DNA of 64,000 nucleotides from Ranitomeya imitator (Eukaryota), in the NCBI RefSeq assembly GCF_032444005.1, contig NC_091289.1, positions 30,256,001 through 30,320,000 on the forward strand, read 5' to 3'. The position numbers and the translations under genes were made by a program. Shown here in pieces: positions 3,497-56,313 of this stretch. The notes under the pieces were generated by a model. It was not told the origin of the DNA. It did no database searches and saw only the letters and a list, made by a program, of their open reading frames with translations. Within the stretch, counting starts at the first letter, position 1, and every line of letters begins with the position of its first letter.

Positions 3497-4130
3497 CCTC
3501 AAGGAGTGTATCCCATGCCTAGAACCATGGCACTTCCAAACATTAGTGTGCACACGCCCTTGGAAAAAGCTTAAACGCGAAACGCGCGTCAGGGGTGCCA
3601 CAGTCATTTAAAAGGTACAGTACTCACCATCTTTACTTCCATCCCTAAGGTTTCCTATCCCTGTTCCTTACTATCATGCCCCCTTTTTTTTTGCTGTATA
3701 CACCATAATTAGGCACTAATTGAAAACTTTTTCATACTTTTTCTGTGGCTGAATCACATTGAGGCAGTTACCATTATAGGGATTGACAATGGAATATATT
3801 TAAGGATATTACAAACACTGTCATGGGGCTTGTTATATTTGGACTACTTCACTATGTATGATATATAAAAAAGATTTTTGTAAGCTTCATTGCTCCACAA
3901 ATTTATAAATATTTAATCTTCACTCCAATTCTAATAGCAGCTCCATTCTTAAAGGTGATGATTCACTTGTAATTTGTGTACCTTTTTTTTGGCTGTTTTT
4001 TTGCATATTGCTGTCCCCATACTAACTGGTTTTACTTTGAATCTTTTAATATTGTATCAATAAAAATTTTCATGTAATTTTATGGTATATAGCTTCCCGT
4101 CTATTTATTTGATTTATGTTATTTAAATAA
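3497..4130 (+). mobile_element. Probable Penelope-like retroelement 3' remnant
   Basis: Hammerhead-like motif near its start, AT-rich tail with aataaa, and direct repeat tgttatttaa flanking it (3483-3492, 4133-4142). Family assignment is inference. Confidence 0.5.
3557..3594 (+). ncRNA. Degenerate minimal type I hammerhead-like motif (U3-A8 variant)
   Basis: ccct-TGGAAAA-a-GC-ttaaac-GC-GAAA-C-gcgc-G-TC-aggg: stem I ccct/aggg, 2-bp stem II, palindromic GCGC loop III, GUC triplet; position 4 is G instead of U. Confidence 0.45.
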
Positions 4131-4249
4131 ATTGTTATTTAATGGAGAATAATATTATTTACTGATATAAGCTGTCCGGAATGGTGACAGATTTTCTTGA
4201 AAGGCAACCCACCTCCCCCTTTTATCCTCCAGCAGGTCTTCTGCTGTTC

Positions 4250-6085
4250 CGGAAGAGCAGAAGAACCGCCGGAGGGAGGGTCAGGAGCTGCAGAAGAACC
4301 ATCGGAGGGAGGGTCAGGAGGTGCAGAAGAGCCGCCGGAGGGAGGGTCAGGAGGTGCAGAAGAGCCGCCGGGGGGAGGGTCAGGAGGTGCAGAAGAGCCG
4401 CCGGAGGGAGGGTCAGGAGGTGCAGAAGAGCCGCCGGAGGGAGAGTCAGGAGCTGCAGAAGAACCATCGGAGGGAGGGTCAGGAGCTGCAGAAGAGCCGC
4501 CGGAGGGAGGGTCAGGAGCTACAGAAGAGCCGCCGGAGGGAGGGTCAGGAGCTGCAGAAGAGCCGCCGGAGGGAGGGTCAGGAGCTGCAGAAGAGCCGCC
4601 GGAGGGAGGGTCAGGAGCTGCAGAAGAACCATCGGAGGGTCAGGAGGTGCAGAAGAGCCACCGGAGGGAGGGTCAGGAGGTGCAGAAGAGCCGCCGGAGG
4701 GAGGGTCAGGAGGTGCAGAAGAGCCGCCGGAGGGAGGGTCAGGAGGTGCAGAAGAGCCGCCGGAGGGAGGGTCAGGAGGTGCAGAAGAGCCGCCGGAGGG
4801 AGGGTCAGGAGGTGCAGAAGAGCCGCCGGAGGGAGGGTCAGGAGGTGCAGAAGAGCCGCCGGAGGGAGAGTCAGGAGCTGCAGAAGAACCATCGGAGGGA
4901 GGGTCAGGAGCTGCAGAAGAGCCGCCGGAGGGAGGGTCAGGAGCTACAGAAGAGCCGCCGGAGGGAGGGTCAGGAGCTGCAGAAGAGCCGCCGGAGGGAG
5001 GGTCAGGAGCTGCAGAAGAGCCGCCGGAGGGAGGGTCAGGAGCTGCAGAAGAGCCGCCGGAGGGAGGGTCAGGAGCTGCAGAAGAGACGCCGGAGGGAGG
5101 GTCAGGAGCTGCAGAAGAGACGCCGGAGGGAGGGTCAGGAGCTGCAGAAGAGACGCCGGAGGGAGAGTCAGGAGGTGCAGAAGAGCCGCCGGAGGGAGGG
5201 TCAGGAGCTACAGAAGAGCCGCCGGAGGGAGGGTCAGGAGCTGCAGAAGAGCCGCCGGAGGGAGGGTCAGGAGCTGCAGAAGAGCCGCCGGAGGGAGGGT
5301 CAGGAGCTGCAGAAGAGCCGCCGGAGGGAGGGTCAGGAGCTGCAGAAGAGACGCCGGAGGGAGGGTCAGGAGCTGCAGAAGAGACGCCGGAGGGAGGGTC
5401 AGGAGCTGCAGAAGAGCCACCGGAGGGAGAGTCAGGAGGTGCAGAAGAGCCGCCGGAGGGAGGGTCAGGAGCTGCAGAAGAGCCGCCGGAGGGAGGGTCA
5501 GGAGCTGCAGAAGAGCCGCCGGAGGGAGGGTCAGGAGCTGCAGAAGAGCCGCCGGAGGGAGGGTCAGGAGCTGCAGAAGAGCCGCCGGAGGGAGGGTCAG
5601 GAGCTGCAGAAGAGACGCCGGAGGGAGGGTCAGGAGCTGCAGAAGAGACGCCGGAGGGAGGGTCAGGAGCTGCAGAAGAGACGCCGGAGGGAGGGTCAGG
5701 AGCTGCAGAAGAGACGCCGGAGGGAGGGTCAGGAGCTGCAGAAGAGCCGCCGGAGGGAGGGTCAGGAGCTGCAGAAGAGCCGCCGGAGGGAGGGTCAGGA
5801 GCTGCAGAAGAGCCGCTCGAGGGAGGGTCAGGAGCTGCAGAAGAGCCACCGGAGGGAGAGTCAGGAGGTGCAGAAGAACCGCCGGAGGGAGGGTCAGGAG
5901 CTGCAGAAGAGCCGCTGGAGGGAGGGTTAGGAGCTGCAGAAGAGCCGCTGGAGGGAGGGTCAGGAGCTGCAGAAGAGCCGCCGGAGGGTCAGGAGCTGCA
6001 GAAGAGCCGCCGGAGGGAGGGTCAGGAGCTGCAGAAGAGCCGCCGGAGGGAGGGTCAGGAGCTGCAGAAGAGCCGCCGGAGGATC
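4250..6085. repeat. 33-bp purine-rich minisatellite (ggagggagggtcaggagctgcagaagagccgcc), about 55 copies
   Basis: 11-aa periodicity in the + strand ORFs 4181-6196, 4197-5930 and 4321-6123. Confidence 0.95.
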
Positions 6086-7369
6086 AAGAGCTGCGATGCC
6101 ATAAGACAGGCAAGGACAGATGAGTATAAGGATTTTTTTTTTACTTTAAAACTTTATCAGTCCTCAAAAGAATCCAGTAAAATGGCGGCCGGCTAAATAT
6201 TTGCATATCAATTCAGCAAAAATGTTGGTTTCGCTAATATCCTAAAATGTTTTAAAAATCTACGATTCAATTCATTAAAGATTAATCTCGCTCCTCTCCA
6301 GGCCCTGCACTCAGACTGTTCAATAGTATTGACAAGGAAAACTGCAACGCCTAATTGTCATTGAACGCTTAGATTTCCAGGAGTAACAATAGAGGAATGG
6401 TGAAAGTAAAAATGTATATGTCTTTTTTGTGTTTTTATCAATTCATTATAGTACTTACTAAAAAGCAATAAATACATGTCAGGAGAGCTGAAAGCGAATC
6501 GCATCTGAATTTTGGAGCGAAGCTTTGTTTTAATGATGATGAATCAAACGATCAGATGAATAAAAGAAAAAAAAAAGTGCCACAAAGCGTTAATCATTTG
6601 TACACATCTGATTTCATAGAGTCACATTTCAATCAGGAAACTAGAGCGCCGGAATAAAGAGACTTTTGATCAGTGAGCGGATAAAGCGCAGAGAGCAAAT
6701 TTCTTTCATACCCGTAGCAAATGAGTGATTTTATCAGCAGTCCAGCTGACGGCCGCACCGGGGACTGATACAGAACAGCTGGTTCCAGGCTTAATTTAGA
6801 AAAATAATTATTAAATATGAATGCACGCATCAGATAAAAGCGCGCTTCTTCTTTAATAAGTGTCAGTGAGGACGGCTGCTGAGAAGAGCTGCAGTGACGC
6901 GTGTCTTCAGGCTGCTGGATAATGTTGCAGGGACAGACCTTAAAATAAGCCGTTCTGTTCCGCAGCAGCCTGGTTCTGTAACCTGAACTCGTAGTGCGCG
7001 CACGCAGGTGCCGCTCTTACGCCTCTGTGCATCATCTGTCCCAAAAATCCAATTTGTGCTCACTAAATAGGGAAGAAAAGCCCCGGCCCCTCTAACGAAG
7101 AAGAGATGAAGCGAGGACTCTGAGCGATGGAAATGATCAGTTCTGACAAGTGATTGAAGATCCAATTACACCTGGAACGAGGCACATTGGAGAGCAAAAA
7201 TGGCGAGAGATGAGATGGCGAGGCGCGAAGAGCACAACCGGGGTCATGGGTGGTGATCCGGTTCTCACGCGTGACACCTTCATGCATCGAAGCGCGGTCA
7301 CATCAGGGTCATTATGCAAAAAGCTGGATAAAAAAAAATGGATCCAAATTAGGCAGCATTTTCTCTTAA

Positions 7370-8164: not shown

Positions 8165-8830
8165 TTGGTGCTCATAAAGTTCTATGGAGGAGGGAGGAGC
8201 TACAGACAGACATTCTGCAGACAAGAGATGACGGTTGGTGCTCATAAAGTTCTATGGAGAAGGGAGGAACTAGAGACTGACATTCTGCAGACAGGAGATG
8301 ACGGTTGGTGCTCAAAGTTCTATGGAGAGAGAACTGTAACTCCAATCTGCAGAATGTCTCTCTAGCTCCTCCCCCTCCATAGAACTTTATGAGCACCAAC
8401 TGTCATCTCCTGTCTGCACAATGTCTCTCTAGCTCTTCCCTCCTCCATAGAACTTTATGAGCACCAACTGTCATCTCCTGTCTGCACAATGTCTCTCTAG
8501 CTCTTCCCTCCTCCATAGAACTTTATGAGCACCAACTGTCATCTCCTGTCTGCAGAATGTCTCTCTAGCTCTTCCCTCCTCCATAGAACTTTATGAGCAC
8601 CAACTGTCATCTCATGTCTGCACAATGTCTCTCTAGCTCTTCCCTCCTCCATAGAACTTTATGAGCACCAACTGTCATCTCCTGTCTGCAGAATGTCTCT
8701 CTAGCTCTTCCATAGAACTTTGAGCACCAACTGTCATCTCCTGTCTGCACAATGTCTCTCTAGCTCCTCCCCCCTCCATAGAACTTTATGAGCACCAACT
8801 GTCCTCTCCTGTCTGCAGAATGCCTGTCTC
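8165..8830. repeat. 68-bp tandem repeat arranged as a palindrome (about 2.5 reverse units, then about 7 forward units)
   Basis: gagcacc recurs at 8391, 8459 and 8527; 8165-8330 is the reverse complement of the same unit. Confidence 0.85.
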
Positions 8831-33729: not shown

Positions 33730-36700
33730 CACACACAGTATGATGTCCCCACAGTACATTCCCCTACACACAGTATGATGTCCCCACAGTACATTCCCCT
33801 ACACACAGTATGATGCCCCCACAGTACATTCCACCCACACACAGTATGATTTCCCCACAGTACATTCCCCTACACACAGTATGATGTCCCCACAGTACAT
33901 TCCCCTACACACAGTATGATGCCCCCACAGTACATTCCACCCACACACAGTATGATTTCCCCACAGTACATTCCCCTACACACAGTATGATTTCCCCACA
34001 GTACATTCCCCTACACACAGTATGATGCCCCCACAGTACATTCCACCCACACACAGTATGATTTCCCCACAGTACATTCCCCTACACACAGTATGATGTC
34101 CCCACAGTACATTCCCCTACACACAGTATGATGCCCCCACAGTACATTCCACCCACACACAGTATGATTTCCCCACAGTACATTCCCCTACACACAGTAT
34201 GATCTCCCCACAGTACATTCCCCCACACACAGTATGATGCCCCCACAGTACATTCCACCCACACACAGTATGATTTCCCCACAGTACATTCCCCCACACA
34301 CAGTATGATGTCCCCACAGTACATTCCACCCACACACAGTATGATTTCCCCACAGTACATTCCCCCACACACAGTATGATGTCCCCACAGTACATTCCCC
34401 CCACACACAGTATGATTTCCCCACAGTACATTCCCCCACACACAGTATGATGTCCCCACAGTACATTCCACCCACACACAGTATGATTTCCCCACAGTAC
34501 ATTCCCCCACACACAGTATGATGTCCCCACAGTACATTCCCCCCACACACAGTATGATTTCCCCACAGTACATTCCCCCACACACAGTATGATGTCCCCA
34601 CAGTACATTCCCCCCACACAGTATGATGTCCCCACAGTACATTCCCCTACACACAGTATGATGTCCCCACAGTACATTCCCCCTCACACACAGTATGATG
34701 CCCCCACAGTACATTCCACCACATACAGTATGATGTCCCCACAGTACATTCCCCCACACACAGTATGATGTCCCCACAGTACATTCCACCCACACAGTAT
34801 GATTTCCCCACAGTACATTCCCCCACACACAGTATGATTTCCCCACAGTACATTCCCCCACACACAGTATGATTTCCCCACAGTACATTCCACCCACACA
34901 GTATGATTTCCCCACAGTACATTCCCCCACACACAGTATGATGTCCCCACAGTACATTCCCCCCACACACAGTATGATTTCCCCACAGTACATTCCCCCA
35001 CACACAGTATGATTTCCCCACAGTACATTCCCCCACACACAGTATGATGTCCCCACAGTACATTCCCCCACACACAGTATGATTTCCCCACAGTACATTC
35101 CCCCACACACAGTATGATGTCCCCACAGTACATTCCCCCACACACAGTATGATGTCCCCACAGTACATTCCCCCACACACAGTATGATTTCCCCACAGTA
35201 CATTCCCCCACACACAGTATGATGTCCCCACAGTACATTCCACCCACACACAGTATGATGCCCCCACAGTACATTCCCCCACACACAGTATGATGTCCCC
35301 ACAGTACATTCCACCCACACACAGTATGATTTCCCCACAGTACATTCCCCCACACACAGTATGATGTCCCCACAGTACATTCCACCAACACACAGTATGA
35401 TTTCCCCACAGTACATTCCCCCACACACAGTATGATGTACCCACAGTACATTCCACCAACACACAGTATGATTTCCCCACAGTACATTCCCCCACACACA
35501 GTATGATGTCCCCACAGTACATTCCACCAACACAGTATGATTTCCCCACAGTACATTCCCCCACACACAGTATGATGTCCCCACAGTACATTCCCCCCAC
35601 ACACAGTATGATTTCCCCACAGTACATTCCCCCACACACAGTATGATGCCCCCACAGTACATTCCCCTACACACAGTATGATTTCCCCACAGTACATTCC
35701 CCCACACACAGTATGATGTCCCCACAGTACATTCCACCCACACACAGTATGATTTCCCCACAGTACATTCCCCCACACACTGTATGATGCCCCCACAGTA
35801 CATTCCACCCACACACAGTATGATTTCCCCACAGTACATTCCCCCACACACAGTATGATTTCCCCACAGTACATTCCCCCACACACAGTATGATGTCCCC
35901 ACAGTACATTCCACCCACACACAGTATGATTTCCCCACAGTACATTCCCCCACACACTGTATGATGCCCCCACAGTACATTCCACCCACACACAGTATGA
36001 TTTCCCCACAGTACATTCCCCCACACACTGTATGATGCCCCCACAGTACATTCCACCCACACACAGTATGATTTCCCCACAGTACATTCCCCCACACACA
36101 GTATGATGTCCCCACAGTACATTCCCCCCACACACAGTATGATTTCCCCACAGTACATTCCCCCACACACAGTATGATGTCCCCACAGTACATTCCCCCC
36201 ACACAGTATGATGTCCCCACAGTACATTCCCCCTCACACACAGTATGATGTCCCCACAGTACATTCCCCCCACACAGTATGATGTCCCCACAGTACATTC
36301 CCCCTCACACACAGTATGATGCCCCCACAGTACATTCCCCCACACACAGTATGATGTCCCCACAGTACATTCCCCCCACACAGTATGATGTCCCCACAGT
36401 ACATTCCCCCCACACTCAGTATGATGTCCCCACTGTACATTCCCCCACACACAGTATGATGTCCCCACAGTACATTCCCTCACACACAGTATGATGTCCC
36501 CACAGTACATTCCCCCCACACACAGTATGATTTCCCCACAGTACATTCCCCCCACACTCAGTATGATTTCCCCACAGTACATTCCCCCCTCACTCAGTAT
36601 GATTTCCCCACAGTACATTCCCCCCACACTCAGTATGATTTCCCCACAGTACATTCCCCCCACACTCAGTATGATTTCCCCACAGTACATTCCCCCCACA

Positions 36701-37620
36701 CTCAGTATGATTTCCCCACAGTACATTCCCCCCACACTCAGTATGATTTCCCCACAGTACATTCCCCAACACACAGTATGATTTCCCCACAGTACATTCC
36801 CCCACACACAGTATGATTTCCCCACAGTACATTCCCCCTCACACAGTATGATTTCCCCACAGTACATTCCCCCACACTCAGTATGATGTCCCTACAGTAC
36901 ATTCCCCCACACACAGTATGATGTCCCCACAGTACATTCCCCATACACAGTATGATGTCCCCACAGTACATTCCCCCACACAGTATGATTTCCCCACAGT
37001 ACATTCCCCCACACTCAGTATGATGTCCCTACAGTACATTCCCCCCACACAGTATGATGTCCCCACAGTAAATTCCCCCCACACAGTATGATGTCCCCAC
37101 AGTACATTCCCCCCACACAGTATGATGTCCCCACAGTACATTCCCTCACACAGCATGATGTCCCCACAGTACATTCCCCCACACACAGTATGATGCCCCA
37201 CAGTACATTCCCCCACACACAGTATGATTTCCCCACTGTACATTCCCCCACACACAGTATGATTTCCCCACAGTACATTCCCCCCCTCACACAGTATGAT
37301 GTCCCCACAGTACATTCCCCCCCCCCCTCACACAGTATGATGTCCCCACAGTACATTCCCCCATACACAGTATGATTTCCCCACTGTACATTCCCCCACA
37401 CACAGTATGATTTCCCCACAGTACATTCCCCCCCTCACACAGTATGATGTCCCCACAGTACATTCCCCCCCCCCTCACACAGTATGATGTCCCCACAGTA
37501 CATTCCCCCCCCCTCACACAGTATGATTTCCCCACAGTACATTCCCCCCCTCACACAGTATGATGTCCCCACAGTACATTCCCCCCCCCCCCTCACACAG
37601 TATGATTTCCCCACAGTACT
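33730..37620. repeat. 35-36-bp minisatellite (cacacagtatgat[g/t]tccccacagtacattcccc), about 3.9 kb
   Basis: Direct periodicity; 12-aa repeats such as MYCGEIILCVGG in the minus-strand ORFs. Confidence 0.97.
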
Positions 37621-38456
37621 TTCTCCCACACGCAGTATAATACCCCACAAACACCCCTTGTCTGTGCGTCCTGCACCACAGTCTCTGCCGCCTAGTCACA
37701 TGACCTGTAAATATCATATGGTGTAAAGATCCTTGTTGATCTTCATTCTATACACAGACTAAATGGTGGCACAGGTATCTGATGGCTCCTCGCTCCACCG
37801 TAATATTCAGCTCTGTGTCTTGAGGATACAGATGAAGCTAAAGTCAGGACATATCCTTCAACTTCTGGGACAGCTTCCCAAATTCAGGACTGTCCCTCTC
37901 TGGCCTTGGGATGGCTGAAAGATATGACACAGCACATATAAATGGATTTCTCGTCTTATTATATGGGTAAAATTGCAGAGTGCTTGTCATGCACCTCTTA
38001 TTACAAAATCCCTTCCAATCTCAACATTTTTAATTATAAAGTTTACTGCTGATTACCACGGTAACCAGCCACTTTGGTGGCCGGCTTCTAAGGCAAAGAG
38101 TTTACTGTATAGCCTGTGACATTTTACACTTTCCAGGTAATAATTATATGAAGTGTGTAAAGTTCCAGTATGACCTCGACATTGGGATCCCCGTTACTGA
38201 TTTTCATGGTTTAGGATGGAACCTTGTTGCACCATTACGCTTTGGATAATCGCAGCATCAAATTGTATACCTCTTTATGCAAATTGCCTCTTCTGAGAAA
38301 AAGAGGACTTAACTCTATAGCGCCACCTGTTGGAAGTAGCGATCCTACAAGTCACAATCAACTCTTTAACGAGTCGTGCAATATGACTTTCTCAGAAGAG
38401 GCAATTTGCATATTATATTTCCCAGAGGAGCATTGCATGGCGAATAAGCCTCCTTA

Positions 38457-39434: not shown

Positions 39435-39859
39435 TTACCTTGACGAGCCAGAGATGGTATGTCACTCTCCATAAGGAGAAACGATACCCCTTATACCTCT
39501 TTAGACATCCTAAATAATAATAATAATCTTTATTTTTATATAGCGCTAACATATTCCGCAGCGCTAAATGAGTAAAACTGATTAACGCAGCAATAATTCT
39601 ACTAAGAAATTATGTTTTTTTATTAGAGAAGTTAAGAATAAATACAGTAAAATGAATCTTTAGCTCTCAGTAGTCCATTGCTCGTCATAAACAGCGCATT
39701 AAACTCCCGTCCTTTCGGCTTCTTACAAATCTTCAAATATTTTCATGTGTTTACGTTCTAAGTTGCTTTTTTATCTGCAAAATAATAATAATAAATATAA
39801 TAAACAAGAAGACGCTAATAATAAAACCTCTCTAGATATCAAGCCTTCACCTTCATATA

Positions 39860-43449: not shown

Positions 43450-44269
43450 TTTCCTTGTACTGCACAGGTGATAATTTAATCACCAACTCATTATTTGTGT
43501 AGGTGATTAAATTATCACCTGTGCAGTACAAGGAAATCCTGAAAACATGACCTGTTTGCAGCCCTCGAGGAATGCAGTTTGACACCCCTGAGATAAATAA
43601 TTACATATTAATGATAAGGGGATGATATGTAAAGCCCAGGTTATACGGTAATGCTGGTGGTATGGAACCCCTTTCTTACCGCTGGTCCTATTGTTGGCAT
43701 GTATAATAAACACAAGAACAAGATATTGTTAATACGAGTATACGTACAATAATGTGATGTATAGTGGATGAAACCCTATTGGCGTGGAATTTTTGGGATT
43801 CCTATAAAAATGAATGAACAGACACGTTCACCTTTCCTCTGACAGACGAGAACGCTGGGGACCTAATCCTGATCTAGAGGCAGGTGTCACCAGGGAGACC
43901 CTCATCGATCATACATTCATCGTACCCTATAATGTGCAGGATGATTATGCCCCTTTAAGGCTTTGTGGACATAGCTGTTTTTCTCGCAGGTGCAGAGGGG
44001 GAGGCTGCGACCGTGAGCGGGCATGTACAGGAGGTGGGTCCGCCGACACAAGAGCCTATTCCAGCTGGATGTGCGTCCAAGGACACACATTCAGCTGAAG
44101 TGTATCGCTGCCCCGGGACCTGTCAGCTCCCTGACCCTGCAATACATGCCGCAGGCCAATCAGAGGCGGCAGCTGACGTCAGCGTGCCCGTCATAAGCGG
44201 CACATGGCAGAGATGTCATGCGCACGCAGAATCAGCTGCAGGCTACAGAAGAGGACACCGTAACAGGAT

Positions 44270-45060
44270 GGGTCTCAGGATGGGGACATTTCACCAGGAA
44301 AGGGACATTTCACCAGGAAGGGGCACAGGATGGGGACATTTCACCAGGAAGGGGCCCAAGATGGGAAACATTGTTATGGCATGGGGGACATTCTACAAAA
44401 AAAGGGACCCATGATGGGGGAAATTATACCAGGATGGCATATATTGTTACAGTAAGAGACCAGGATGGGAGACATTATATCAGGAAGGGTCCCAGGATGG
44501 GGGACATTTCATCAGGAAAGGGCCCATGATGAAGGACATTGTTATAGCATGGGGACATTATACAAAGAAGGAGCCAATAATGGGGAAAATTATACCAGGA
44601 TAGCATATATTGTTACAGGAAGAAACCAAGATGGGGAACATTATTACAGAAAGGGGCAGAAAAGGCGAGGATAAGGGACTTTATTACAGGAAGAGGCCCA
44701 GGATAGGGGACATTATAACAGAATGGGGGTCATTATACCAGGAGGGGGCCTAGGATGAGAGACATAATTACAGGATGGGGGCCTAGGCAGGGGACATTAT
44801 TACAGAAAGGGGCCCAGGTTCGGAGACATTATTACAGGAAGGGACCAGGATGGGGGACATTATACCAGGAAGGGGCCTAGGATGATAGACATAATTACAT
44901 GATGGGGGCCTAGGCAGGGGATATTATTACTGAAAGGGGCCAAGCTTCAGGGACATTATTACAGGAAGGAGCCAGGATGGTGGACATTATTTCAGAAAGG
45001 GGATGAAAAGCCAGGGACGGGGGATATTAATACAGGAAGGTGCCATAATGGGGACATTAT
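44270..45060. repeat. Degenerate ~32-bp repeat (ggggacattattacaggaaggggcccaggatgg); same family in reverse at 53690-54060
   Basis: Recurrent caggatggggga / ggacattat motifs; ends near the hAT-like terminus ctagttacgccaccg at 45126-45140. Confidence 0.75.
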
Positions 45061-45990: not shown

Positions 45991-47941
45991 CAGGGCTGGC
46001 GTCAGCACCCGGCGTACCCAGACAAGTGCCGGGGCCCTGGCGAGATGGGGGCCCATTCAGGGCCGGCGTTAGGGGCAGGCAGCTGCTTAGGGCCCCCGCT
46101 CCACCAGGGGCCCTCAGCTAGCGGCACATGAGCAGCCGCTATGAGGCCTCTGTGAGGCAGGGGGGCCCGCCTGTCACCAGCCCCAACTCCCCCGCCGCAT
46201 TGAACTACACCTGACGCTCCCTCTCCCATCATTCCTCACTCTGCCTCTGACACTGCCGCTGTGGGTGCACAATGACGTCATCGCGCACTTGCTGTGTGTC
46301 AGGCAGTGCAGCGGCAGCCGCCGAGACCGGAGCAGGGAGCAGCGCCCAGCACGGGCACGTTGAGAAGTGAGGAGTGTTTTGGTTTTTTTTTGTAACTATA
46401 ACAGTGAGTACTGGACTATGGGGCCATTCTTGGGGGGAGGAGGGCTGTGCTGTATACTACATGTCTGTGCTATATACTACATGGCTGTGTTATATTCTAC
46501 GTGGGCTGTGCCTGTGCTATATACTATATGGGCTGTTATATCCTACGTGGGCTGTGCTCTATACTGTATGGGCTGTTATATACTACTTGGGCTGTGCTAT
46601 ATACTACATGGCTGTGCTATATACTACATGGATGTGTTATATACTACGTGGCTGTGCCATATACTATATGGGCTGTTATATGCTACGTGGGCTGTGTTGT
46701 ATACTACATGTCTGTGCTATATACTACATGGCCATGTTATATACTACGTGGGCTTTTTTATATACTATATGGGCTGTTATATGCTACGTGGACTGAGCTG
46801 TATACTACATGTCTGTGCTATATACTACATGGCTGTGTTATATACTACGTGGGCTTTGCTATATACTACATGGCTGTTCTATATACTACATGGGCCCTGT
46901 TATATACTATGTGGCGGTGCTATATACTATATGGGCAGTTATATGCTACGTGGGCTGTGCTATATACTACATGGCTGTTCTATATACTACATGGGCCGTG
47001 TTATATACTACGTGGGCTGTGTTATATAATATGTGGCTGTGCTATATACTATATAGGCTGTTATATGCTACGTGGGCTGTGCTATATACTACATGGCTGT
47101 GTTATATCCTACGTGGGCTGTGCTCTATACTATATGGGCTGTTATATACTACATGGCTGTGCTATATACTACATGGCTGTGCTATATACTACATGGATGT
47201 GTTATATACTACGTGGGCTTTGCTATATACTACATGGCTGTTCTATATACTACATGGGCCCTGTTATATACTATGTGGCGGTGCTATATACTATATGGGC
47301 TGTTATATTCTACGTGGGCTGTGCTATATACTACATGGCTATTCTATATACTACGTGGGCCGTGTTATATACTACGTGGGCTGTGTTATATAATATGTGA
47401 CTGTGCTATATACTATATAGGCTGTTATATGCTACGTGGGCTGTGCTATGTACTACATGGCTGTGCCATATACTATATGGGCTGTTATATGCTACGTGGA
47501 CTGAGCTGTATACTACATGTCTGTGCTATATACTACATGGCTGTGTTATATACTACGTGGGCTTTGCTATATACTACATGGCTGTTCTATATACTACATG
47601 GGCCCTGTTATATACTATGTGGCGGTGCTATATACTATATGGGCTGTTATATGCTACGTGGGCTGTGCTATATATTACATGGCTGTTCTATATACTACGT
47701 GGGCCGTGTTATATACTACATGGGCTGTGTTATATAATATGTGACTGTGCTATATACTATATAGGCTGTTATATGCTACGTGGGCTGTGCTATGTACTAC
47801 ATGGCTGTGTTATATACTACGTGGGCTGTGTTATATGCTACATGGCTGTGTTATATGCGATCATGAATTGTGGTATGTGTTAAAGGGGGGCCCACTGAGA
47901 CTCTTTCGCCCGGGGCACTCAAAAACCTGGAGCCGGCCCTG
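45991..47941. mobile_element. hAT-type non-autonomous element carrying an internal minisatellite
   Basis: TIRs cagggctggc / gccggccctg; 8-bp TSD TTTACAGG at 45983-45990 and 47942-47949. Confidence 0.92.
46440..47860. repeat. ~21-bp minisatellite (gggctgtgctatatactacat-like) with ~350-bp higher-order units
   Basis: Direct periodicity; ORFs at 46809 and 47517 share an identical 75-aa translation. Confidence 0.93.
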
Positions 47942-47979
47942 TTTACAGGCTCCTGGTTCCCTGCACATTGAACTTTTAA

Positions 47980-48287
47980 AGGGGCTGTCTGGAACCTTTA
48001 CATTGATGGCCGATTCTTAGGTCATCAGTGTCTTATAAATAGGGGCGAGACAATCAGCAAACCGGCCAATCAGCTGCTGACGTGAATAGGTGGCGGATGT
48101 GCAGTTCCCGGCCACTTTATAGTTAATGGAATTGTGCTGTGCAGCTCCACAACTGAGCACTTCCAGATGCCGCAGGCACTGGCAACATCTGATCGGCACG
48201 GGCACGGGGTGTCACTCTACCACCGATCAGATATTGATCATCTATCCTAAGGATAGGCCGTCAATGTAAAACTCCTGGAAAACCCGT
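47980..48287. mobile_element. T2/Kolobok-type MITE
   Basis: ttaa|aggggctgtctgg ... ggaaaacccgt|ttca (right TSD mutated). Confidence 0.7.
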
Positions 48288-48395
48288 TTCAGTGGTCTGT
48301 CGTCATAAATCAGCTGAGAAGTCCCCAGAAAAGAAAAAAAATAGATACAAGAGTAACAAACTCCTTCATTAGACCATCAGAAGGAGCTCACTCAC

Positions 48396-48419
48396 TGATA
48401 GATTCTCAGATAGCACATT
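48396..48419 (-). other. Candidate 24-nt micro-exon (AATGTGCTATCTGAGAATCTATCA) of the unannotated gene
   Basis: Acceptor ctgtcttttgctggctgcag; donor gtgagt; followed by an 82-nt intron-like segment (48395-48314) ending ttttcttttctggggacttctcag. Reading phase unresolved. Confidence 0.4.
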
Positions 48420-49245
48420 CTGCAGCCAGCAAAAGACAGTGCAACACAGAGGCTGTAGAAGTCAGACGGTGCAAAATATTTTATGAAACCCAATTGCAAA
48501 AATCATTGCTGAGCCCAGAATAAATGTATTTCAATAAAACAAAATGAGAAAAAAAACACTTTTATCAGGACAAGCAATACACATTAAAGATCTATCTGTG
48601 CATTTACATCACATAACCACTAGATGGTGCTGTGTCAATGCAAATTCTACATAACCTTGTTGTTTCTGGGCTAATAGCTGTAAATGGAGCAGGGGATTAT
48701 GGGGACAGAAGATCTTTTCAGAGACCTTATATAATAATTCATGTTTTCCTAAAATGTATCTTTGGACTACAGAGTGACGACAACGCAGCACTGGGATGTG
48801 ACATGCCGTTATGCCGCACTTTGAATGCTTCAAATGTGGCAAATTTGCTGCTTTGGGCACAGAGCAAAACTCGCAAAAATGGAAATCACATATTTTATAT
48901 ATTTCAATTCCTATTTTAAAAGAAAAAAGTAAAAGGGACAAACAAAAAAAAAAAACAAAGAGAAAATTTAAATCTGCAAATCAGTGATGTCAGGGATCCT
49001 GTAATGGTGCGAAGTCCAGTCTGATAGTCCTGACCGCGGGGTCAGGTGCCTGTTCTGTGATCTCACCCGACAGCTACGTGACAGTGATACCGCACATAGC
49101 TCTGTGCCATCCGCCTGGTTGTGTAATTCACCCTTGTAACTGATTGGTGGCGCGCTGACCTCAGAGACCCCAAAGATCCTCGCAATGAAGGTAGTGCAGC
49201 ACTAGGACCCCTTTATTGTTTTACTACAGCACGACCATCACTTAA

Positions 49246-49703
49246 AGAAGCTCTCCTCCTTCCATCAAAGTTTTTATCCTCTTAATATATTTCAGTCATT
49301 AGATTACATAGCACTGTGTACGTACAATTGCTCATTTTACCTTTTCTACCCAGATAATTCTTCTCTTTTCTCTGCTTTATGTAGAAACAGGAAGTCTCTT
49401 GTCCCTGCATTTATCATTCTCCTCCTTAACTCGTGACCCAGTTGCTCCCTCTTTCCCCCATCAGAGACTTTCTCATTTACTCATGACTCATGCAGGAAAA
49501 ATTTACCTCCCGTTTCTACATAGAGCTTAGAAGGATTCAGCTAGTCAGTTATTAATCACGTGATGTCACAGACCTAATGGAAAAGAGAAGAATCATCTGG
49601 GTAGAAAGGCAAAATGAGCAATTGTAAGTACACAGTGCTGTATAACATGATGACTGCAATATATTAAGAGGATACAAATTTTGATCAGAATAGGAGTGCT
49701 TTG
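49246..49703. mobile_element. Palindromic T2-type MITE; a related copy lies at about 56880-57250
   Basis: TTAA flanks (49242-49245, 49704-49707); internal inverted arms tacaattgctcattttacct...ctacccagat / atctgggtagaaaggcaaaatgagcaattgta shared with the 56.9-kb copy. Confidence 0.75.
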
Positions 49704-49776
49704 TTAATTAAATGAGAATAACCCCATATATTATGGCCCATTACTCCATGAGTACATAAATAATGTCGGAGCCTAC

Positions 49777-49794
49777 CTGCCTTCACTGTCATCC
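49777..49794 (-). CDS. Candidate unannotated gene, exon 3 (18 nt, W-DDSEG-R/S)
   Basis: Acceptor atttctttttattctctttacatttag; donor cag|gtaggc; phase 2 to 2, in frame with the two preceding candidate exons. Confidence 0.5.
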
Positions 49795-49881
49795 CTAAAT
49801 GTAAAGAGAATAAAAAGAAATATTGGCATAGCGTCACTCCATGATAGAATAATACATCAATCATCTCCTGATCCAGAGTTA

Positions 49882-50067
49882 GGCTTTGTGCACACAACGT
49901 CTTATTCTCCGCAGAACGCGATGGGTTTTTCCAGCATGAGACAAATCAGGAAACTCTGGAGTTTTATTTTTTTCTGCAGCGTCTTTTTCCTGAACGTTTA
50001 TTCTTTTGAAAGGTTTTTGACAGATTTTTCAGGCGTTTACAGCCTTAAAACATGTGTGCACATAGCC
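49882..50067. mobile_element. PIF/Harbinger (Tourist-like) MITE, 186 bp
   Basis: TIRs ggctttgtgcacaca / tgtgtgcacatagcc; TSD TTA/TTA. Confidence 0.85.
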
Positions 50068-50537
50068 TTATAGCTTATTGTACTCCAGAGCTGAACTCAT
50101 AATTCTGTTAGTAAAAATCACAAGGGGGAGGGGGGGGGGGGGGAGTAAATTTGTGAAAAAATTTTGGAACTTTTTAAAAAGTCAAATTAGTCAAAAACAT
50201 CTGGAGATTGTGAACCCCACTGACAGTGGCGGGAGTGAAAAAAACAAAGAAAACAAACGAGAACAATGAATCTAAACGTTAAAAAAAAGCCAAATAAAAG
50301 GAGAATAATGAGCAAATTTTTTTAAAAAAATAGACATATGAAAGTGCGAATGCCATAATGAATCAGGTGCATATATACTTTTATGTGTGCCGTCTGATGG
50401 ATCCACACAACACATATAACGTGTGGCATAAAAACTGTCATTTTAATCTGTATATTACTGCAGTAATAATAGTAACAGAAGAAAAGGAATAAAGTATAGC
50501 ATGGTATAATATAAAGTAATAAAATATCAGATCTTAC

Positions 50538-50559
50538 CAGTCTCCAGCTTCTCTTGCAA
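50538..50559 (-). CDS. Candidate unannotated gene, exon 2 (22 nt, V-AREAGD)
   Basis: Acceptor acttttgtttcttttag; donor ctg|gtaaga; 77-nt intron from exon 1; phase 1 to 2. Confidence 0.55.
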
Positions 50560-50636
50560 CTAAAAGAAACAAAAGTCTCAGATACTTGTCATTCTAATAG
50601 AATTATATAAGAACATATGTCTCCAGTCCGTCTCAC

Positions 50637-50664
50637 CAGTGACAGCTGATGGCCCGCAGCCCAT
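50637..50664 (-). CDS. Candidate unannotated gene, first coding exon (MGCGPSAVT)
   Basis: ATG in strong context (gacATGG); donor ctg|gtgaga; MGCxxS N-terminus. Confidence 0.55.
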
Positions 50665-50958
50665 GTCTGCAATGTGGCACCGGATCCCAGAATGACTTCT
50701 CTATTCCTGAGCTGGGATTTAACAGATTATTTTCAATGCTGATCTTAAAAAAAAAAAATGGAATTAATATCGGTGATTGCCATAAAGATGATAGGCATGA
50801 TAGGGACCCTTAGAGGAAACGTTGGCCGTAGACATCGGAAACAAATGGTCATATATTGGCTGGTTACTATTGTCCCATGACAAACTGACGTCTGCGTAAA
50901 AAATGGATTGAGTGGGTCTCATTTTCTAAGTATCATGTGAGTGTATTAAAAAAAGATA

Positions 50959-52254
50959 CACTGCTCAAAAAAATACAGGGAACACTTACACAACAGAATA
51001 TAACTCCAAGTAAGTCAAACTTAAACTGTCCACTTAGGAAGCAACACTGTTTGACAATCAATTTCACATGCTGCTGTGCAAATGGAAGAGACAGTAGATG
51101 GAAATTATTGGCAATTATCAAGGCACCTTCAATAAAGGAGTGGTTCTGCAGGTGGGCACCACAGACCACGTCTCAGTACCAATGCTTTCTGGCTGGTGTT
51201 TTGGTCACTTTTGAATGTTGGTTGTGCTTTCGCACTCGTGGTAGCATGAGACGGACTCTACGACCCACACAAGTGGCTCAGGTAGTGCAGCTCATCCAGG
51301 ATGGCACATCAATGCGAGCTGTGGCAAGAAGGTTTGCTGTGTCTGTCAGCGTAGTGTCCAGAGGTTGGAGGCGCTACCAGGAGACAGGCCAGTACACCAG
51401 GAGATGTGGAGGGCAACAACCCAGCAGCAGGACCGCTACCTCAGCCTTTGTGCAAGGAGGAGCACTGCCAGAACCCTGCAAAATGACCTCCACCAGGCCA
51501 CTAATGTGCATGTGTCTGCACAAACTGTTAGAAAACGACTCCATGAGGATGGTCTGAGTGCCCGACGTCAACAGATACGGGTTGTGCTCACAGCCCAACA
51601 CCATTCCAGATGCTTGGCATTTGCAACAGAACACCAGGATTGGTGCCATGCTCTTCACAAATGAAAGCAGGTTCACACTGAGCACATGTAACAGATCTGG
51701 AGATGCCATGGAGAGTGATCTGCTGCCTGCAACATCCTTCAGCATGACCAGTTTGGCAGTGGATCAGTAATGGTGTGGGGTGGCATTTCTTTGGAGGGCC
51801 GCACAGCCCTCCATGTGCTCGCCAGAGGTAGCCTGACTGCCATTAGCTACCGAGATAAGATCCTCAGACCCCTTTGTGAGACCATATGCTGGTGCGGTTG
51901 GCCCTGGGTTCCTCCTAATGCAGGACAATGCCAGACCTCATGTGGCTGGAGTGTGTCAGCAGTTCCTGCAAGATGAAGGCATTGAAGCTATGGACTGGCC
52001 CGCCCGTTCCCCAGACCTGAATCTGATTGAACACATCTTGGACATCATGTCTCGCTCATCCACCAACGTCACGTTGCACCACAGACTGTCCAGGAGTTGG
52101 TGGATGCTTTAGTCCAGGTCTGGGAGGAGATCCCTCAGGAGACCATCCGCTGCCTCATCAGGAGCATGCCCAGGCGTTGTAGGGAGGTCATACAGGCACG
52201 TGGAGGCCACACACACTACTGAGCATCATTTCCTTGTTTTGAGGCATTTCCACT
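50959..52254 (+). mobile_element. Decayed Tc1/mariner element with frameshifted transposase (about 51246-52222); right TIR missing
   Basis: TA followed by cactgctcaaaaaaata; fragments [41 protein letters not shown]. Confidence 0.92.
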
Positions 52255-52282
52255 AAAGAGCAAAACCAGTTTCCTATCTTAA

Positions 52283-52694
52283 AGGGGTCGTCCACTACTT
52301 GGACAACCCTTCCTGAATCCCTATGTCTCCCCTCCCCTCCCCCTGTAAAATAATATAATTTATATTCACCTCCGGTACCAGTGCCATTCCAGTGGTGTCG
52401 GGACTGGTTCTCCCTATGCCACAGGATCTCTGAGCTGGCATCACTTTCCTCTCCTACAGATGTAATTGACATCCAGAAGAAGTGAGGGAGCAGCCGCAGC
52501 TTTCATTTTCTTGGGATGTCTTGATCTGTGCATAGGAGAGGAGAGTGAGGCCAGCGCGGAGATCGCTTGGTATTGGGAGTACCAGTGCCGACACCTCTGG
52601 AATGGCGCTAATAACGGAGGTGAATATAAATATTATTTTACTGGGGGGGAACATAGGGCTTCAGAAAGGATTGTCAGAGTAGTGGAAAACCCCT
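52283..52694. mobile_element. Palindromic T2/Kolobok-type MITE
   Basis: TTAA at 52279-52282 and 52695-52698; termini aggggtcgtccactac / gtagtggaaaacccct; internal inverted halves. Confidence 0.85.
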
Positions 52695-53689
52695 TTAATA
52701 ATTGTAATGTGTCCGTGAAAAACGTAAATGCTGCGGGCATGATCCTTATGGGATTAGATTTATTTTTTTTTGGCACCCATGGATATGAATAGGAGAATCT
52801 CATCCAAAATACGGATGAGGATTTTTTCACACTGATCAAGGTCATCTGATCAGCCCAATAAAATAACACTGGTCCATAGATGTCAGGTTTTTACATGCAC
52901 ATTATTTGGACAGAAAATACGTACCCCCAGAAACGAGACACTAACGCTATCTCTGTGTGAGAAGAAGAGCCCACCAGTCACATCCTCATCCATCACCTCA
53001 GCTGTTTTCCTACAGCCTGAAGCCGCTCATTCAGACGACCATTACTTTTTGAGTCCGAGAAAAACAGACCTTTCTTCAATGCGTGCTGGATCCAATTTTC
53101 ATCCATTTTTGGTCCGTGTGTCCATTTTTACCAACAGTATGGTATTTTTTATTAAAAAAAAATCCAAACCTTTTCCTACCCATTAAAAACGGTAAAAAAA
53201 AACCTAGATCCAGATGACACATGGACGGCATCTACGTGTTTTCTGGGTAGGGTTTTCACGGACCCACTCATCTAAATGGGAGAATTTGATCTGCAAACTG
53301 GATTAAAATCAGAGGTCTTTTTTTGTGGACAATGGAACTGAAAAAAAAAAAAAGGACCCTTTGGTGGTCAGTTTATGACTTGGATGTCCAATGTCCATAA
53401 AATATCTTCTTTTCATATCTACAATTAAGAGAAATGCCTAAAACCGTTTCCCCATGTCTTCTTTGTAATGGATTCCATGAAAACTCATGCCATACGGATG
53501 GGCAGTGGCATCACTAGAGTCCGATGGGCCCGAGTGAAAAATTTGGACCTGGATCCCCTACCTGCATGTTGGTCGGATGTTTGGACTCTTGTGGCGTTCT
53601 AAATCCTATAATGACATGCGTATTTTCCTCTCATATAATAATATTGCCCTTCCTAGCTGTTTACTGTAAAAATCTCCCCCGTTGTGGCT

Positions 53690-54060
53690 CCCATCCTGAA
53701 ATAATATATCATCCTAGGCCCCTTCCTGGGATAATATCCCCTGTGCTGGGGCACATACTGTAAATATGTACCCCATCCTGGCCCCTTCCTGTAACAATGT
53801 CCCCATCCTGAGCCCCTTCCTGGTATAATGTCCCCCATCTTAGGCTCCTTCTTGGTATAATGTCTCTCATGCTGAGCTTCTCCATGGAATACTGTCCCCT
53901 GTTCTGGGACACTTACTATAATAATGTACCCCAGCCTGGTCCTTTCCTGTAACAATTCCCCCAATAATGAGCCCCTTTCCTGTATTCTGTCACCCATCCT
54001 GGGACTCTTTCTGGTTTAATGACCCCATCCTGGGCCCCTTTCCTGTAAAATGCTCTTCAT
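53690..54060. repeat. Degenerate ~32-bp repeat, reverse orientation of the 44270-45060 family
   Basis: ccccatcctggccccttcctgtaacaatgtc motifs; hAT-like start cagtggcatcactag at 53503. Confidence 0.7.
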
Positions 54061-56313
54061 CCTGGATCCCTTCCTTGTATCCTCGGAGGCACGTTCAGCT
54101 GAACTACGCGCCGGCTTCGGCGGCCCACCGCCACCTCTCAGAAGGGCCTCATCGCAGCCGGTCGGTCGCACCCTTGGTGGATGGGGTCCTTATGCATATG
54201 GGCAGGCTTTTTGTGTTTTTTTTTAAACCCACACACATCTGAGTTATAAGAAAAAAAAATGGATTTATGTGAAAACTACCACACTGCTGTACATTGAGCC
54301 ATATGTCGCATATGTACAGCATACAGACCGAAGATACGCTCATGCAAGCTTCACTTTAGAGAGTTTATACCAAGATCACAACATAATGGCAAATCGCTGG
54401 GGGTCTGAGCCCAGGATCCCCCCCCCCCCAATAACTACGAGAATATGGTTGCAGAGTCTAGTTTTAATTGAGCAGCAATCAGGTATGTGCACTGCTGGTG
54501 ATAGGTGCCGACTAGTGATGAGAGAGTATACTCGTTGCTCGGGTTTTCCCGAGTACGCTCAGGTGATCTCCGAGTATTTGCGACTGCTCGGAGATTTAGT
54601 TTTCCTTCCCGCAGCTGGATGATTTACGGCTGCTAGACAGCCTGAGTACATGTGGGAATTCCCTGGCAACCCCCACATGTACTCAGGCTGGCTAGCAGCC
54701 GTAAATCATGCCGAGCAACGAGTATACTCGCTCATCACTAGTGGTGCCAACAACATGTTATCTTGGTAGAACACAGCTAAAGGTGACAACAGATCTTTGG
54801 ATTCCATGCTAAAGTATCACTCAAGCGCATTGGAGTTTTATGGTTCCGATCTGTGAATGTCACCAGGACAAAGTGCAGGAATCTGGGCAACAGGTCAGTA
54901 ATGCTGCAGAGTCAGCCGAGTTTATCAGTGCCGCACTAGGGCAAGGGTCACGAAATCTACACAACTATTACATTTCTCAATTTTGCCCAGCACCAAGTTT
55001 TTTTTCCCCTATTTATATTGCTGCACAACTATGACACAGCAGCTCAAGGATCCACAACGTTCGCTTTTAGCATGGGAAGACACAGGTTGCCCACCTCGCC
55101 TTCACAATGACATAATATTCCACTCACAGAGAATTACACTTTTAGGCGGAGGTTCAAATGTAAAAAAGAAATAAAAATTCTATATAAATTTATTTTACCT
55201 TTTTCCTTATGGTCCCTTTAAAGTAATAAAAAGAGTAAAAAAAATAATACAAGTAGTAATAATATGTATATTTATTAACACAAATGTGAATTGCATACTG
55301 GTCCATGGGTAAAGAAACGCAGAAATGAACCATAAATCCTTAAAATACTGCCCCCCTATGGCAAGTTAGCACAGAAAACCTTAGTATTTTATAGCCAGAA
55401 TTAGAAAAACATTACTGCCCCCCGAAAAAAAAAGCGCCACCCCTATTTCTATTAAGGTGAATAGTTCAGAGCTGTAATACCAAGTACAACCTGTAGACAA
55501 GGGCGGTGCTGTTTTTACAGAAAAAAAGCCATATTTTTCTAATTTTGGACCTTTAATCTAATTATTTGTCACTGCCAATGTGCTATAACCTATAGCAACA
55601 AAAGCAGAGATCATGCAAATTAAGCATTAAATGGAAAAGCCTAATTTTTGACAATGTAGTATGCGCCTATTAAGCCCTGAATGATGATCTCAAGCTCTTG
55701 CTTCTTTGGCATTTTTTCTAATGGGGTAGTAGTGGTAATATTAGGAGGACGTGGTAAAGGGTTTTGGGTGAAATTTCCGCCTATAGCCATGCAGTGCTTA
55801 TTCTGTAGCAGCAATATCATCCGTCGTGGGCACGGTGTCAAGGCTGACCTGCATATAATGTCATCTGCTTGGAAGGCACAGTGCCCAGACATTAGGGTTT
55901 CACTGCAATATTTTGCACGTTCCGACCATAGAAATTGGCTCATACTGTCAGAGTGACATCGTCTTACCGCCCATCACGATAAATAGGGTTACCGAACTTA
56001 CTTGCATTTTGCTAGGTTATTAATTCATAGTATGGTTTCGGGTCAAGGGGCTCAGCGCATCAGTCCGAATTCAGGCTTTAACTCTGACAGTGCCACTGGG
56101 TACCATTTACAACAATAGTGCGGCCGCTGCAGTACCCATTATGTGCAATGCGTCGTTCTAAAGACTCCGCTGCACTGGAAGTAATCTGTATTCAGACACA
56201 GTCTTCTGTTCACAAGGAACTAAGCTACTTTCCTAGAAGGTCTACAGATCCCCTGAGAAGCTCAGAGAAATACAGCAATAGAGAGGAGCAGAGTCCGGAG
56301 CAGTCCTGAAGGT

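Follow-up and report, generated by a model that had tools for sequence, protein, structure and literature searches.

The 64,000-nt stretch of Ranitomeya imitator DNA analyzed here (the window) carries, on the minus strand between ABHD6 and RPP14, a short series of tiny open exons beginning with an ATG that opens MGCGPS, and the question raised by this locus is whether these exons constitute a genuine gene and, if so, what kind of product they encode. An earlier note based on the sequence alone had proposed a candidate unannotated micro-exon gene, with three predicted exons and encoding a small lipid-anchored membrane protein. We therefore investigated whether the proposed exons are spliced, whether their reading frame is conserved in other frogs and whether the predicted product resembles any known protein.

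A spliced micro-exon transcript between ABHD6 and RPP14

Reading the minus strand of 49600-50900 and splicing the proposed pieces reproduced every sequence feature described in the earlier note. The ATG, at 50664-50662, lies in a strong context (GCAGACATGG, G at -3 and G at +4) and opens 28 coding nt (50664-50637) ending in CTG|gtgaga. A 77-nt intron (50636-50560) ending in ttttag is followed by a 22-nt exon (50559-50538, V-A-R-E-A-G-D and part of W) ending in CTG|gtaaga, and then by an 18-nt exon (49794-49777, W-D-D-S-E-G), which follows tttacatttag and ends in CAG|gtaggc. Once spliced, these three pieces read MGCGPSAVTVAREAGDWDDSEG plus AG, without a stop. It is to be noted that the N-terminal motif alone is weak evidence: of 2540 ATGs in the window, 24 fit the generic myristoylation pattern and exactly one, the ATG considered here, opens M-G-C-x-x-[STAGCN]-{P}, which is about what we estimate chance would give.

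In order to determine whether these exons are transcribed, we searched sequencing runs with positions 50500-50780. Eight runs from two studies contained 32-41% of the sampled words whereas four other runs with the same species label contained none, indicating that expression depends on the sample. Contigs of four of the positive runs were compared to positions 47900-53699. One contig per run (395-513 nt, word depth 47-102, no mismatches) covers 50637 up to 50758-50861 and displays the joint 50559/50637, which skips 77 nt with GT..AG on the minus strand. Every contig has a loose end starting at 49776, of 183, 184, 232 or 247 letters, and in each contig the letters between exon 1 and this loose end number exactly 41, corresponding to exon 2 (22), exon 3 (18) and one G shared by the donor and the next exon. 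Both micro-exons are thus present in all four contigs. Although the library type of these runs is only presumed, unique intron and flank bins (49840-50033, 50228-50421 and 52362-53699) have zero or near-zero depth, so that the libraries behave as RNA and the transcript is not a continuation of ABHD6, whose last coding exon is at 56490-56317. None of three contiguous ORFs of exon 1 is on record.

The transcript continues into a fourth exon that the earlier note had missed. The 30 loose-end letters occur once in the window, at 45785-45756, where an acceptor cccag|G opens a 72-nt exon (45786-45715) encoding (R)PPTQTTHVSQEAEVDDDVQEEVN and ending in phase 2 at TAG|gtaaga. The frame remains open and reads …SEG-RPPTQTTHVSQEAEVDDDVQEEVN, with AG left over. 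With a simple weight matrix the four donors score 4.6-5.5, and only 0.2% of the GT sites on this strand reach 6. At the other end, exon 1 (50637-50861) comprises a 5' leader of at least 197 nt, its 5' end being a minimum. This leader contains four upstream ATGs at 50852, 50835, 50798 and 50783, which argue against efficient translation, although all are in weak context and all close before the main ATG. Just upstream of the furthest contig end, within 50840-50900 (minus strand), a near-CRE (AGACGTCA) and a CCAAT box followed by ATATAT are possible promoter elements. The true transcription start may be hidden by a Tc1/mariner-like transposase remnant (51023-52258, plus strand; ORFs with HTH and DDE-like text) lying directly upstream of exon 1, where RNA-contig depth is very high (hundreds) with many variant letters, as expected for a multi-copy element.

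The end of the ORF, also missed by the earlier note, is less certain. Intron retention, or the use of acceptors at 43518 or 39774, would in each case give Arg-stop and hence 47 residues, whereas a few other acceptors (for example 40747, 40430 and 45389) would give tails of 8-17 other residues. We consider the acceptor at 39774 (ttttgcag|ATAA) somewhat more likely than not. The tentative terminal exon 5 (39774 to about 39599), which was not seen in reads, would supply the A completing the Arg47 codon, followed by a TAA stop at 39773-39771. This "A + TAA" layout is the same as that of the best acceptor of the corresponding interval in Spea bombifrons ("A + TGA"). Furthermore, AATAAA at 39624-39619 predicts an end near 39599, and the longest contig (513 nt) equals 225+22+18+72+176. 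The two terminal exons also share a weak block, TTTGAAGATTT, the score of which was reached by 18 of 500 shuffles. The resulting product, of about 47 residues (MGCGPS…EEVNR), is leucine-free, acidic (12 D/E, pI about 4) and presumably disordered: MGCGPSAVTVAREAGDWDDSEGRPPTQTTHVSQEAEVDDDVQEEVNR.

Conservation of the reading frame in other frogs

To ascertain whether this frame is under selection, we retrieved syntenic loci using HTD2 homologues as anchors. In R. imitator the HTD2 ORF (28886-28398) is on record on a 206-Mb contig of GCA_032444005.1, with RPP14 (129 aa) just upstream and PXK downstream. In the retrieved S. bombifrons locus the ABHD6 CDS ends at 2238 and the RPP14 CDS starts at 8559, no gene being called between them. 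A local blastn of the window interval against this locus gave the ABHD6 last exon as the best match and, next among non-repeat matches, window 50678-50645 against Spea 5057-5090. Reading the Spea sequence revealed ACAGCCATGG at 5071 and, on the same strand relative to its neighbors, exons of 28, 22, 18 and 69 nt (5071-5098, 5253-5274, 5396-5413 and 5858-5926), all bordered by GT-AG introns and with phases matching those in the window. They are followed by the best acceptor of the interval at 6683 (A TGA), with AATAAA about 55 nt later.

The Spea product, MGCGPSADTAPRECKDWTDSEDRPPTQTTHVSCEPGPDEGQEEGKR, is identical to the Ranitomeya product at 31 of 46 residues. Synonymous differences are saturated (24.2 of 30.3 sites, pS 0.80) while non-synonymous ones amount to 21.8 of 107.7 sites (pN 0.20; Fisher p = 3e-9), and differences by codon position are 8/11/27. 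MGCGPSA is retained through three synonymous changes and RPPTQTTHVS through six synonymous and no non-synonymous changes, whereas intron flanks are 30-55% identical, which is near random. In Pyxicephalus adspersus, the very edge of the retrieved locus contains aacacag|A…AACAG|gtgaag, a 69-nt exon in the same phase reading (R)PPTYSTHVIGESAGPALEIDLN, 4 kb upstream of the RPP14 ATG. Only exon 4 is visible in this species and its tail is much less acidic, but the exon has the same length as that of Spea and an RPPTxSTHV core (RPPTYSTHV). We conclude that this is a protein-coding gene under purifying selection, which exists in Hyloidea, Pelobatoidea and, assuming that Pyxicephalus belongs there, Ranoidea.

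Other loci anchored on HTD2 gave nothing further. No counterpart was found in Xenopus tropicalis, quail, Podarcis, Nanorana or Engystomops, but we count these loci as uninformative rather than as evidence of absence, since synteny is broken in the first two and only 3.6-6.5 kb upstream of the RPP14 ATG are covered in the last three, with no MGC or RPPT exon. A Podarcis MGQSASC start at position 1135 of its locus has no donor nearby. The ABHD6-RPP14 adjacency is therefore not universal: the upstream neighbor of rpp14 is an SCO1/SenC-domain gene on the opposite strand in X. tropicalis, and a RIIa + cNMP-binding, i.e. PKA-regulatory-subunit-like, gene in quail.

The gene seems to have been missed by annotation, as the earlier note had supposed, although this is only partly supported. 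It rests on the absence of a CDS call in the Spea interval and on protein searches, without sight of the annotation of the R. imitator assembly at this locus. Using the contiguous exon-4 ORF of Spea, no protein of 24-77 aa sharing three 5-mers was found among 5.8 billion clusters, a collection that contains the proteins of the R. imitator genome, and an exhaustive phmmer search of 1.84 billion representatives returned nothing at E ≤ 0.001. These negatives are soft since the queries carried only about 24 informative residues, and distant or long relatives could have been missed. A literature search for PPTQTTH found nothing. Proteins below about 50 residues that are split over micro-exons are almost invisible to gene finders.

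A predicted dual-acylation signal

The MGCGPSA N-terminus fits the PROSITE-type myristoylation pattern G-{EDRKHPFYW}-x(2)-[STAGCN]-{P}, and the same hexapeptide MGCGPS is experimentally shown to be dual-lipidated and cilium-targeting in human STMND1 and in C. elegans PEF-1 (PMC11238091, PMC11569196). STMND1 orthologues all share MGCGPSQ, and the human protein was shown by click chemistry with G2A and C3A mutants to be N-myristoylated at Gly2 and S-palmitoylated at Cys3, the motif directing it to membranes and motile cilia (PMC11238091). However, the frog gene is not STMND1: no stathmin-like K/E/R-rich exon, as would be expected for a stathmin-like tubulin-binding domain with its embedded NLS, is present on the strand of the gene anywhere in the window, and there is no similarity beyond residue 6. 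PEF-1, a PPEF-type phosphatase, begins with MGCGPSSGRQNPST, and these first 14 residues suffice to enrich GFP in cilia, an effect that requires palmitoylation and is abolished by the C3S mutation (PMC11569196). PEF-1 is a large phosphatase with EF hands, whereas the frog product ends at about 47 residues. The N-terminus also matches the consensus MGCxxS/T quoted for the SH4-type signals of Src-family kinases and G-alpha subunits, which sit on large catalytic proteins, while here the signal makes up an eighth of the product.

The nearest kind of molecule is the lipidated disordered microprotein exemplified by calcimembrin (C16orf74), a short protein with no transmembrane segment, held on membranes by Gly2 myristoylation plus reversible S-acylation and acting through short linear motifs (PMC12612047). 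There is no sequence similarity between the two: calcimembrin is acylated at Cys7 and Cys14 and carries a composite LxVPxIxIT calcineurin-docking motif, whereas the frog peptide has no Leu or Ile and thus lacks this motif.

Taken together, these results support with good confidence a small, independent protein-coding gene with four observed exons and probably a fifth, terminal one, and they support the interpretation of the earlier note, although translation and lipidation are inferred and not shown. By established enzymology and analogy with the two proteins above, we infer that after removal of Met1, Gly2 is co-translationally acylated by N-myristoyltransferase and Cys3 is palmitoylated by a DHHC enzyme, pinning the peptide to the cytoplasmic face of membranes. 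That this might be the ciliary membrane remains speculative and is doubtful on present evidence, since it rests on a six-residue identity that may be convergent. The conserved W17/DSE and RPPTx[TS]THV segments and the acidic tail would then bind or regulate an unidentified partner. It is even conceivable, though unlikely, that this gene is the founding member of an unrecognized vertebrate family of micro-exon-encoded, dual-lipidated, acidic microproteins tethered to the ciliary or plasma membrane, older than Anura and either lost or still unannotated in amniotes, including humans, next to ABHD6.

Alternative explanations

We considered whether the exons could instead form an alternative far-upstream leader of the RPP14-HTD2 transcript, the MGCGPS frame then being an upstream ORF or an N-terminal extension of RPP14. 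The gene lies on the same strand directly upstream of RPP14, a locus that is already bicistronic. In Spea, joining exon 4 (ending at 5926) to the RPP14 ATG exon (8546) would read through in frame (…EEGK-RCCVN-MRETAG…), and RPP14 models in Dendrobates tinctorius (173 aa) and X. tropicalis (184 aa), as compared to 129 aa elsewhere, carry N-terminal extensions. However, in R. imitator the join of exon 4 to RPP14 exon 2, at the acceptor 30499, reads AGC TGA, an immediate stop, so no fusion is conserved, and RPP14 has its own promoter-like first exon in both frogs, with a GTGAGT donor at about 30881 in the window. The X. tropicalis extension is unrelated sequence, its extra first exon (6215-6370 of the retrieved locus) sitting in the promoter region shared with the oppositely oriented SCO1-like gene and looking like a model artefact, and the D. 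tinctorius extension starts only about 4.3 kb upstream of the RPP14 ATG. Models fusing upstream exons to RPP14 in some frog annotations deserve a second look. The 513-nt contig fits a short mRNA ending after an AATAAA, and purifying selection on the peptide holds either way. We regard this scenario as unlikely.

Equally improbable in our view is that exon 4 splices on to further coding exons, the real product being a larger protein of which only the lipidated N-terminus is described here. Exon 4 ends at a strong conserved donor in all three frogs, the contigs run 112-176 nt beyond exon 4 into sequence that was not seen, and STMND1 and PEF-1 place MGCGPS on large proteins. Nevertheless, in Spea only about 2 kb separate exon 4 from the first exon of RPP14 and the one good acceptor there (6683) gives Arg-stop followed by AATAAA, while a crude splice and ORF scan detected no convincing open, spliceable exon in phase 2 between 45714 and RPP14 in the window. 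Finally, a spliced non-coding RNA with an accidental frame, a possibility raised by the chance expectation for an MGC start, the four upstream ATGs, the AT-rich promoter region next to a transposon and the lack of a known protein homologue, is strongly disfavored because exon lengths, phases, start codon and frame are kept between frogs of different superfamilies, with 7 of 7 and 10 of 10 identical residues in the two conserved blocks, while introns and synonymous sites are scrambled.

Repeated sequences around the gene

A 103-nt MITE-like inverted repeat (49242-49344 and 49605-49707, 83% complementary) lies in intron 3 just downstream of the 18-nt exon and has an RNA-contig depth of 270-1200. 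Long tandem arrays with periods of about 122/364 nt, giving long Y/C/L-rich false ORFs, and of about 32/64/127 nt are located at 46443-47858, 44276-45002 and 53710-54080, the first two sitting in intron 4 or just past exon 4. Two further stretches made of tandem repeats, 34000-38000 and 4000-6100, display extreme GC skew (-0.6 and +0.4), the second yielding stop-free repeat frames of 580-676 codons (RREGQELQKS…, GGSGAAEEPPE…).
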